The notes under the pieces were generated by a model. That model was not told where the DNA came from, made no database searches, and was given only the letters and a program-made list of their open reading frames with translations. A DNA stretch of 64,000 nucleotides. Source: Octopus bimaculoides (Eukaryota). A program made the position numbers and the translations under genes. Below are positions 27,101-30,100 of the stretch, in pieces; position 1 is the first letter of the stretch; every line of letters starts with the position of its first letter. Where the stretch lies: assembly GCF_001194135.2 (NCBI RefSeq), contig NC_068983.1:135542210-135606209 (forward strand), written 5' to 3'.

Positions 27101-30100
27101 ATTGATTTAAGCTCTGAAATGGTTATCTGGTTAGCTTTCCTTATATTACTGTTTTAGTTCAAAATCTTAGTCAAGGATGCTGTCAACATAAAAAACAAGT
27201 TTCCCTGTTAACTTTAACCAATTACCCAGCATTACAGGTTTTGCTTTTTCAGCAAGACACAAGGTTCATGTGGGAAGAAGTAAAAAATATATGGTCAGGA
27301 GATGAAACATTAAAAAAAGAGTAGTATTAAAATATGTACACATCTATGTCTAAAAAACTAAAATTATTTCATCAACTTATTTGGAAAGAACTGGTGTTAA
27401 AATTACTATTTATCCTAGTCAGAACAGGTAAAATTCCTACCTTAACAGGAAGTAGTCAAAATCTAAACATTATGCAACTGGCAACTGTTAGTCAGTCAAA
27501 GATTCAATTAAAACAATTGTTTTGTTGATTGGTTATTTTTACCAGATGGCTGCTGAACGTCAAGTGTATCAGTCATTTTATATGTATACACACATCGTGT
27601 GTGCCTGCACGTGTACATGTTTTGAAAATTGCAAGTTTATTCAGTTTTTAAATTAAATGTAAAAAAAAAAAAAATCAATGATAATAATAGTACATATTTA
27701 ATTAAAAGTAAAAATGTTAGTGTTTTTAAAATCTAACAAAAAAAAAAAAAAATCCCAATAAAATAAAATGAAAACCTCACTAAGTCATAAGAAAAAGAAT
27801 AAAGATTTTTTATCATTGAATCAATAAATACCAATATTCAATACAGAACAACATGGAGTTGAAAAAAAAAAAAAAAATTTTGTTTGAATTTTTTAAGATT
27901 GCTGATTTTAAAAAGCTGCTTTATCTTCAAATAATGTTTGAAAAGAAATGGAATGAAACATTGACCTAATTAAGGTGAAAGATTTTAATCCTACCTGAAT
28001 CGTTTTAGATTAAATGTGCTATATGCAGGATTGACTAAGAGACATAGCAGAATAAGATTTATAAAAAATAAAGTAACATAGTCAATTACAAGAAACCAAT
28101 ACAAAATTAAAAGCAAGTGATAGGATTGAGGAAATGAGAAGGAAAATATATAAGCTATGACAAGGATGAAAAGAAGGAAAATATAACAGACAATGAAAAA
28201 AATGATAAAACACAAAGCAAAACCTATTAAAAGTAATATCAAAGTATAAAGCCAAAATACACAATTATTTTTGTAAAATGGCAAACCAATATTTTGAAAT
28301 GGTGTTTTTAAGAAAGCAATGAAACCAAGAAAAAAAAAGGTGCAAGATATCAACCTTTACAATCTTCAGTGTTAAATTGCACACATGAAATCATAACAGA
28401 ACAAAGTGTGTACATGTGTGTGTGTGTGTGTGTGTGTGTGTGGGGGGGGTGTGTGTGTGCATGAGTAAGAGATGTTAAACTGAATGTTAAAGCAAAGATG
28501 TGAAAGACAACAGATTTATAGATTGAATGTGAAAAAGGAGAAGAGGAGTGAGGGTTATTTTCAATTAAGTTACAGATAACAACAAAATATAAAGAACAAT
28601 ACTGAATGTTCCAGAAACTTACAGATGAAAGCTAACAGGTGAGGAGGACAAGGGTGGTTAAAATAAGGTGAAATGATGTGTAGAGGGAGGGAAAGAAAAA
28701 ACAAAAACAAAACAACCATGCCTGCTAGGTGCTGAAAAGCTAAAGAATGTCGGGGCAGGAGTGTGTGTTAACCCAGCAACCAACCTGTATTCTTCTTGAC
28801 CTGCTGTGTCCAGAATATCCAACAGACAAGTATCCCCATCTATGACAACCTGTTTTCTGTAGGAGTCCTCTGAAAAGGAAAAAAACAAATTAACAATGAA
28901 ATTTAGCCAACGTTTAAAACCAACCTGTATTCTTCCTGACCAGCTGTGTCCAGAATGTCCAACAGGCAAGTCTCGGAATCAATAACAACCTGCTTTCGAT
29001 GAGAATCCTCTGAAATGCAAAGATACCAAAGTTGAAATGCTTTTCAAAGATTATTTGAATATAGCCTCACTATAAAGAATGTCAATAGGGACCAGGGACA
29101 AGGACCTCAGCTTACATCCATCTGTGTAATCACACTGTCACCTCTATCATATTGGCTCTTGCTGCTCCTCAAAAATTGATGCAAGCATCTCTTCCCTTCA
29201 ATCCCCTTTTGTTTAATCTCTTACACCTTTCATCTAAATATTCTGCTTTAGAATTTATCCCCACTATATTGCAGAAACCCAAGCTGAACATTAGCTCTAC
29301 CCAGATACTATTCTGAATGTAAGATGAACTTGAAAAAATGTAAACATGCACTGACTTCTTAATTTAAAGATAAAACCTTTTTTTACATTTGCCATAGGTA
29401 TTGGGAGCATTTATGCTATCATAGATAAAAAATAATTTTTTTTGACAGTACTGGAGTTATTGCTAATAACTAATGCAATGGCCTGTGGGTGAGATGTGAG
29501 GTTTCCAATGACTCAGAAAGTGCCAAAAAATTTAGTCTTTTTTTTATGTACTGCATTAGTGCATGTATATTCCTTTGCAGCAAACCACAATTCATGCACC
29601 CATACCCATTTTAATCAATTTGATAATTCATAAAACTTTTAAAAGCTGATGGTGTGCCATAATACTTTTTAATGCCTTATTCAGAGGGTAAGAATAAAAA
29701 AAGATTGAAAAATGCTGTCCTAGAGAGATAAAAGGTAAAGTCCATCCTGGCAGTATTTGAATTTGATAAATAGAATTGCAAATTAAATACTAATCAGATA
29801 AGCAAACATTTCTGCTAAACTCATACCTTTATAAATATATAATACTTTTTTCAAAGCTGGTTAGCCAGTTTCCATGGTGTACAAGTGACCAAGACAACAG
29901 CATTCCCTTAAATGGGATGCTAGTCCATTGCAGAGTTCAAGTTGATTACATCAACACCAGCACTTGACAGATATTTTATCAACTCTAAAGGGTCGAAAGG
30001 CAAAGTTGATTTCAGTAGGATTTGAACTCAGAACGTAAAGAGATGAAAGAAATGTGCTAACATATGTGCCACATGCTAATGATTCTGCCAGCTCACTGCC

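Follow-up and report, generated by a model that had tools for sequence, protein, structure and literature searches.

The sole classical Ras gene of coleoid cephalopods carries two versions of one coding exon, here called exon A and exon B, which form a mutually exclusive pair derived from an ancient tandem duplication of a 140-nucleotide (nt) unit. In Octopus bimaculoides, both exons lie on the minus strand of a 64,000-nt stretch of genomic DNA (RefSeq assembly GCF_001194135.2, contig NC_068983.1, positions 135,542,210 to 135,606,209), hereafter called the window, in whose numbering all Octopus coordinates are given. Use of exon B is predicted to yield a canonical Ras protein with Y40, G48, and a mild D49 change, and use of exon A would yield a Ras protein in which H40 ends the core effector loop and S48 and E49 occupy the switch III turn. 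On balance, we favor the reading that these are ancient, mutually exclusive exons and that the exon A form (Ras-A) probably binds Raf-type domains much more weakly, with a changed effector profile.

Two versions of one Ras exon

Exon A (28925..29009) and exon B (28785..28869) are both 85 nt long, encode residues 37 to 65 in the same phase, have AG acceptors and GT donors, and are identical at 69 of 85 nt. Their similarity reaches into the flanks, giving the 140-nt tandem unit, with 112 nt at 81% identity. On the minus strand, exon A reads cag/AG GAT TCT CAT CGA AAG CAG GTT GTT ATT GAT TCC GAG ...TAC AG/gttggt (slashes mark exon boundaries), with H40 at 29001-28999 (CAT), S48 at 28977-28975 (TCC), and E49 at 28974-28972 (GAG). 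The corresponding codons of exon B are Y40 at 28861-28859 (TAC), G48 at 28837-28835 (GGG), and D49 at 28834-28832 (GAT). The donor CAG/gttggt is shared by both exons and is nonconsensus and weak; the polypyrimidine tract is strong at exon B and weaker at exon A. The original prediction for this locus had placed the codons and coordinates of both exons correctly to the base, and its view of the two exons as alternatives to each other is supported by the results described below.

The closest solved structure to the encoded protein is human KRAS4B (E = 4e-102), and because this alignment is free of gaps over residues 1-166, human Ras numbering is valid for the octopus protein. The two isoforms differ at residues 40, 48, and 49 only, while switch II and the membrane anchor are the same. 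The core effector loop (residues 32-40) is the canonical YDPTIEDSY in isoform B and YDPTIEDSH in isoform A, a noncanonical loop that leaves the gene inside the classical Ras family. As all 22 lophotrochozoan Ras proteins read carry Y40, G48, and E49, the ancestral state is Y/G/E, and H40 and S48 in exon A, together with the mild D49 in exon B, are the derived changes. The same pair with the same three amino acid differences is present in Sepia, so the differences between exons A and B are not due to chance.

The three positions differ in how freely they vary in Ras proteins generally. Position 40 was Y in 247 of the 249 retrieved Ras-like proteins containing the motif, and H was found only in the two cephalopod A isoforms. 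In the same set, position 48 was G in 218 proteins and otherwise D, A, N, S, R, E, or Q, and position 49 was mostly E, with some D. Judged from these proteins, H40 is the remarkable change and S48 falls at a naturally variable site. The original prediction had treated H40 and S48 jointly as an effector specificity switch; S48, being at a variable position, is a weaker candidate for such a role than H40, which was absent from the 247 other proteins. A short-peptide homology search for other proteins with H40/S48 returned short fragments only, none of them with H40.

Conservation and age of the exon pair

The arrangement of the pair is conserved in cuttlefish. A 3.4-kb Sepia contig, unspliced or genomic and present in at least four runs (L020 to L023), was found by searching with a read-through open reading frame (ORF) spanning the intron. 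Exon A occupies 2193-2277 of this contig and exon B 2334-2418, with a 56-nt intron between them, so that the order A-intron-B is kept. The 56-nt intron also keeps the frame in Sepia, and a single ORF (2144-2590 in L020 to L023; protein P0246) runs through exon A, the intron, and exon B; the contig may represent pre-mRNA, a retained-intron transcript, or genomic DNA. B-form and A-form proteins (P0124 and P0125, respectively) were obtained from RNA sequencing (RNA-seq) assemblies, two runs of which, SRR19578112 and SRR1386223, are named as Sepia esculenta in papers.

Three lineages, namely Octopus, Sepia, and a third decapodiform, share the same exon A peptide with H40, S48, and E49, although 10 to 12 synonymous sites differ. 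The conservation of H40 and S48 among orthologous copies of exon A had been proposed as a check on the original prediction, and the comparison came out in its favor. The third lineage is the source of the A-form contig L005 and is more divergent, as 27 differences were counted outside the variable exon. By the Nei-Gojobori method, exon A differs between Octopus and Sepia by 12 synonymous and 0 nonsynonymous changes over approximately 63 nonsynonymous sites (proportions of synonymous and nonsynonymous differences [pS and pN] of 0.66 and 0, respectively), compared with 51 synonymous and 5 nonsynonymous changes in the rest of the coding sequence (CDS) (pS, 0.54). The silent sites of exon A thus evolve like those of the rest of the gene while its replacement sites are frozen, which excludes a decaying pseudo-exon. 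Because exon A has evidently been under strict purifying selection since before the divergence of octopus and cuttlefish, Ras-A is best regarded as a working protein.

An alternative view takes exon A for a pseudo-exon that is decaying or noisy, and the corresponding RefSeq isoform for an annotation artifact; it draws on the weaker polypyrimidine tract of exon A and on the fact that in Octopus only predicted RefSeq models with this exon were seen. Against it stand the ratio of 12 synonymous to 0 nonsynonymous changes, splice sites that are intact in both lineages, and spliced, full-length exon A mRNA contigs in four independent runs from at least two species. We consider it refuted by these substitution counts and mRNAs, and its residual probability is minimal.

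Within a species, silent sites are saturated between exons A and B (pS, 0.66 to 0.77), so the duplication must be old. Its presence on both sides places the exon pair, as judged from these alignments, before the octopus-cuttlefish split. Published clocks date this split to approximately 270 million years ago, and an Octopus-Sepia silent-site distance of approximately 1 fits such a deep divergence.

One exon per mRNA

Since 85 nt is not a multiple of three, inclusion of both exons or of neither shifts the reading frame, and productive mRNAs therefore hold exactly one of the two. Indeed, mRNAs constructed in silico with both exons or with neither contained stop codons within a few dozen codons. 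This frame incompatibility would act, via premature stops, as a second and independent safeguard next to one that is probably steric. The intron between the two exons (28870..28924, minus strand) is 55 nt long (56 nt in Sepia) and conserved especially in its 3' two-thirds (TTCATTGTTwATTT...TTTTTTCCTTTTCAG), and candidate branch points lie 20 to 35 nt from its 5' splice site. Such a spacing between 5' splice site and branch point is too close for splicing from A to B in animals where it has been measured. The 55- to 56-nt intron is thus probably not removable, and steric exclusion would enforce the choice of A or B, as with exons 2 and 3 of alpha-tropomyosin.

All 15 full-length cephalopod mRNA contigs that were read contain exactly one of the two exons, 4 of them exon A and 11 exon B; as these contigs were retrieved by exact protein match, aberrant splice forms would have been missed. 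Four independent RNA-seq runs, covering at least two species, yielded full-length contigs with exon A only, and 16 contigs (11 of them read) have exon B only. As a crude indication, these numbers (4 versus 16) point to B as the more common of the two and to A as dominant in some samples.

The introns around the pair are unalignable between Octopus and Sepia with the exception of two conserved pieces. The first is an island extending from approximately 40 nt upstream of exon A to approximately 15 nt downstream of exon B, with 87.6% identity over 283 aligned columns. The flank upstream of exon A (29010..29046, minus strand) is still alignable between the two (blastn and MAFFT against L020) and contains an acceptor tract, ttggtatctttgcatttcag, weaker than that of exon B. 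The second piece lies 35 to 70 nt downstream of exon B, where a conserved element (28714..28750, minus strand; 2459-2498 in L020) with the sequence GCTTTTCAGCACC..TAGCAGGCATGGTT is a candidate splicing-regulator site; TAGCAGGCATGGTT is perfectly conserved in the two species. Conservation of the neighboring intron sequence is well known as a sign that an alternative exon is regulated. Within this element, a GCATG at 28721-28717 lies 64 nt past the end of exon B (73 nt in Sepia), and neither species has another within 300 nt of exon A or exon B. GCAUG is the core motif of Rbfox proteins and usually promotes inclusion when located downstream of an exon. As a lead, the conserved GCAUG element may regulate the choice between A and B in an Rbfox-type manner.

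Other candidate control elements gained no support. In Octopus, a 24-nt inverted repeat with 92% complementarity brackets the pair, with one arm approximately 30 to 55 nt upstream of exon A (29040-29063) and the other approximately 840 nt downstream of exon B (27922-27945); it has no counterpart in the Sepia contig and was discarded as a conserved looping element. For docking- or selector-type pairing among the conserved elements, nothing rose above shuffled controls within the limited flanks of the two species compared. Exons A and B themselves form no unusual hairpins (z scores of -0.8 to +0.5).

Predicted effector binding of Ras-A

In a KRAS deep mutational scan (PMC10866706), I36 and Y40 are key hydrophobic interface residues for RAF1, and Y40 can be replaced by F alone for RAF1 binding, its ring making a cation-pi contact with R89 of RAF1. 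The same scan reports many Y40 substitutions that inhibit RAF1, PIK3CG, and RALGDS, and gives folding costs of +0.06 kcal/mol for Y40H (not significant), +0.51 kcal/mol for G48S, and +0.31 kcal/mol for E49D (PMC10866706). Because these costs are small, Ras-A should fold and be stable. HRAS Y40C activates PI3K selectively and not RAF1, RALGDS, or RASSF5 (PMC5147862), and Rac1 G12V/Y40H is defective in PAK1 activation and keeps actin remodeling (PMC4610213). Mutations in switch I also lower GTPase-activating protein (GAP)-stimulated hydrolysis (PMC5538825).

Residues 48 and 49 lie in the beta2-beta3 loop, which belongs to "switch III," an element linked to both nanoclustering and the orientation of Ras at the membrane (PMC4563131). 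In this region, D47A/E49A has an activating effect, and G48R increases nanoclustering as well as the recruitment of effectors while binding of the Ras-binding domain (RBD) in vitro is unchanged (PMC4563131). The background given with the original prediction agrees with these reports with regard to the retention of PI3K and the loss of Raf and RalGDS by Y40C, the loss of PAK binding by Rac1 Y40H, and the link between the beta2-beta3 turn and membrane orientation.

Since Y40 is otherwise invariant and only Phe is tolerated at this position in human KRAS, where the residue contacts R89 of RAF1, Ras-A is most likely a weak Raf binder. Raf-type RBDs would be bound much more weakly, the rank order of effectors would change, possibly with that of GAPs, and the membrane behavior of Ras-A may be altered as well. 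Exon choice would then retune Ras output and leave the Ras level, the coupling to guanine nucleotide exchange factors (GEFs), and the membrane anchor unchanged. In a more specific form of this proposal, a splice-selectable Ras variant has been kept for approximately 270 million years, and exon choice converts a Raf-competent into a Raf-blind Ras that still serves other effectors, thereby rerouting signaling in particular cells; we regard this version as plausible only in a tentative sense. The direction of the bias in the original prediction, with Raf lost and PI3K kept, was extrapolated from Y40C and not from Y40H and therefore appears weaker than stated. Its further suggestion, that splicing may reroute Ras signaling in cell types such as neurons, is speculative. 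Because many Y40 substitutions in the KRAS scan inhibit RAF1, PIK3CG, and RALGDS alike, a general attenuator would be as likely as a PI3K-biased form.

As a general attenuator or decoy, Ras-A would have all of its RBD interactions weakened by H40, and it would give little signal while continuing to take up GEFs, membrane sites, and nanoclusters, so that exon choice sets gain and not pathway. The identity of the isoforms outside residues 40, 48, and 49, including switch II and the anchor, fits this idea. However, selective loss has precedent, as Y40C keeps PI3K activation and Rac1 Y40H keeps some outputs; a pure loss of function would be achieved more simply by lower expression; and the co-conservation of S48 and E49 suggests tuning over mere inactivation. 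We thus deem an attenuator role unlikely.

It is also conceivable that the isoforms are functionally equivalent, with the three differences being neutral and the exons kept for splicing control, robustness of expression, or subfunctionalized regulation. The limpets Patella vulgata and Patella caerulea indeed keep two tandem copies of this exon, 48 nt apart and with 2 to 3 silent differences, which encode the same peptide (12502-12586 and 12635-12719 in L006; 11737-11821 and 11870-11954 in L007). Furthermore, position 48 varies, D/E at position 49 is a conservative exchange, folding costs are small, and the locus shows strong RNA-level constraint at exon B. In contrast, Y40 is invariant in 247 of 247 other Ras-like proteins, with only F tolerated for RAF1 binding, and H40, S48, and E49 remained fixed while 10 to 12 synonymous sites changed, although neutral residues should have drifted or gone back to Y. 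Equivalence of the isoforms therefore seems improbable to us.

Several observations weigh against the reading of A and B as mutually exclusive exons encoding Ras proteins with different effector binding. A tandem pair can persist without any protein difference, because the Patella copies encode the same peptide, and position 48 is variable in Ras generally. In Octopus, use of exon A is known from predicted RefSeq models, the transcript contigs read being decapodiform. Steric exclusion by the 55-nt intron is extrapolated to cephalopods from other animals. Among the conserved pieces, within the limited flanks of the two species compared, no RNA duplex exceeded shuffled controls (z scores of -1.9 to +1.5), and RNAalifold found no compensatory pairs in Octopus and Sepia. 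The predicted effect of H40 is extrapolated from human KRAS and HRAS and from Rac1, and cephalopod effectors could have coevolved to accept H40.

Near-frozen silent sites of exon B

The silent sites of exon B are nearly frozen between Octopus and Sepia, with 1 synonymous and 0 nonsynonymous changes (pS, 0.057), corresponding to a difference at 1 of 85 nt. This freeze is significant in comparison with both the rest of the CDS (Fisher P = 1.5e-4) and exon A (P = 3e-4). As exon B shows 9 to 16 differences in 85 nt from non-cephalopod molluscs, the freeze is specific to coleoids.

A hairpin inside exon B was rejected as the cause of this conservation, given ordinary folding z scores, and pairing of exon B with the conserved flanks was not supported by either shuffled controls or RNAalifold. 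Likewise, RNA editing was considered as the source of A/G differences among Sepia contigs; these are ordinary third-position polymorphisms, and low-level editing would be invisible in consensus contigs. Possible causes of the freeze are a high density of splicing-regulatory signals or a double-stranded substrate, for RNA editing or another process, formed with sequence outside the compared region. More speculatively, the frozen sites and the conserved introns may mark an extra layer of RNA-level control, such as a splicing-regulator platform around the GCAUG or an ADAR substrate.

The same exon in other lophotrochozoans

A single copy of the exon is present in the protobranch bivalve Solemya velum and in the annelid Capitella teleta. 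The oyster Saccostrea echinata has one copy followed by approximately 10 copies of a unit of approximately 45 nt consisting of the 3' end of the exon and its 5' splice site (6481-6907 in L008). This minisatellite unit (…GACACAGCAGGTCAAGAGGAATACAG/GTTAGTG…) amounts to an array of potential decoy donor sites. Together with the Patella pairs, these arrangements suggest that this Ras exon is evidently prone to tandem duplication. A duplication ancestral to molluscs is not supported, as one copy is found in Solemya, Capitella, and Saccostrea and the Patella pair looks separate or homogenized. Most simply read, the diverged exons of cephalopods arose in a lineage-specific event, and homology with the Patella pair is possible.

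Several predicted isoforms were also noticed in other lophotrochozoan Ras genes, including Mya arenaria X3 (L27 in place of H27), Liolophura X2, and Lineus X4. In a Ras model of Mytilus edulis, a GAGGV segment is duplicated in a way that resembles an annotation error at an exon junction.

Structure and identity of the Ras gene

The window is AT rich, with a GC content of approximately 0.29 to 0.41, and contains a single Ras gene on the minus strand, with many small exons spread over more than 46 kb (tblastn with human HRAS as the query). This gene is the Octopus Ras gene, KRAS4B-like and a member of the classical (p21) Ras subfamily. Its translation contains the P-loop GAGGVGKS, DTAGQE, and NKxD motifs, and Pfam family PF00071 is assigned to all close homologues.

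Coding exon 1 (MTEYKLVVVG) lies past the end of the window. Exon 2 (49333..49381) extends from the rest of codon 11 to the first two bases of codon 27 and encodes the P-loop GGVGKS; it was placed by tblastn, splice sites (ttgcag/CGGG...ACCA/gtaagt), and translation. Exon 3 (35787..35815) comprises 29 nt, with the third base of H27, FVEEYDPTI, and the first base of E37. Downstream of the A/B pair, S65 is completed in exon 5 (11181..11283), exon 6 (9878..9917) ends with the first base of L113, and exon 7 (5258..5418) encodes LVGNKVDL...TLVREIRKY. The last coding exon (3046..3105) encodes a polybasic stretch and a CAAX box (CVLL), a membrane anchor of the KRAS4B type. All of these exons are on the minus strand.

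The assembled proteins correspond to the NCBI O. bimaculoides entries GTPase HRas X1 (form B) and X2 (form A), with which they are identical over the window-encoded residues 11-185. The form A protein (X2) is also found in Octopus sinensis, the form B protein (X1) is also named for Argonauta hians, and the Octopus vulgaris model is form B with an N-terminal extension. In both O. bimaculoides and O. sinensis, the gene spans approximately 150 to 160 kb.

In the intron before the last exon, an ORF at approximately 3464-3520 (minus strand) ends in a CAAX-like sequence, with a Cys further upstream, and resembles a palmitoylated alternative Ras C terminus; no convincing in-phase acceptor and no transcript containing this ORF were seen. 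Several dispersed or tandem repeat families of approximately 200 nt, resembling short interspersed nuclear elements (SINEs), occupy 30550-31490 within the intron that precedes exon A; downstream of exon B, there is a (GT)n microsatellite at 28406-28441. A scan of the whole window against Rfam returned no known RNA family.

Relation to known systems and significance

Mutually exclusive exons produced by tandem exon duplication are likewise known in another small GTPase gene, human RAB6A, which encodes Rab6A and Rab6A'. The Rab6A/A' differences are reportedly located near the switch regions, and only Rab6A is said to bind Rabkinesin-6. That pair differs from the cephalopod one in belonging to the Rab subfamily of vertebrates and in that the changed residues do not include the core effector-loop tyrosine; its isoforms have been reported to be equally common and largely redundant. 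The adjacent, homologous exons 2 and 3 of alpha-tropomyosin are separated by a short intron, comparable to the cephalopod intron of conserved length (55 to 56 nt). The alpha-tropomyosin intron is said to be too short for joint use of its 5' splice site and branch point. Beyond this steric likeness, the cephalopod exons add the safeguard of frame incompatibility.

In classical Ras itself, the fourth exons of KRAS4A and KRAS4B are likewise alternative, homologous exons, whose conservation goes back hundreds of millions of years (PMC9882654), and the cephalopod Ras gene, with its polybasic stretch and CAAX box, is the invertebrate counterpart of KRAS4B. The KRAS exons vary the C-terminal part of the G domain and the membrane anchor, whereas the cephalopod pair varies switch I (Y40) and the switch III turn. 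The same study of Ras evolution describes a single Ras in invertebrates and strict conservation of switches I and II across eukaryotes and leaves cephalopods unmentioned (PMC9882654).

The nearest functional parallels are the laboratory effector mutants T35S, E37G, and Y40C and Rac1 Y40H, of which Y40C and Rac1 Y40H demonstrate that a single change at residue 40 can separate effector pathways. These mutants were engineered, whereas the cephalopod H40 is encoded in the genome, selected, switched by splicing, and paired with S48 and E49. No characterization of the effector selectivity of His at Ras position 40 was found in the literature. Full-text searches for mutually exclusive or duplicated Ras exons, cephalopod Ras isoforms, and Ras Y40H returned nothing describing these isoforms. 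Both are already present in RefSeq and UniProt as automatic predictions (X1 and X2), so that their interpretation and not their existence is new. Likewise, the type of mechanism is known, and its target, the core effector-loop tyrosine of Ras, is what is new.

Much of the interest in this locus would rest on a biochemical difference between the isoforms. If they prove equivalent, the locus would still be a clean case of ancient mutually exclusive exons, one of which is under an unexplained constraint at the RNA level. Substitutions of Y40 that separate effectors are known only as engineered tools, and if exon choice does reroute signaling through a Raf-blind Ras, the laboratory Y40 effector-separation mutants would for the first time have a counterpart in nature. 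A differing binding profile would provide a ready-made, physiologically validated reagent for dissecting the use of Ras effectors. It would also show the effector loop itself to be a place where evolution has diversified the output of a single Ras gene, adding a signaling example to the posttranscriptional diversification of proteins in cephalopods.

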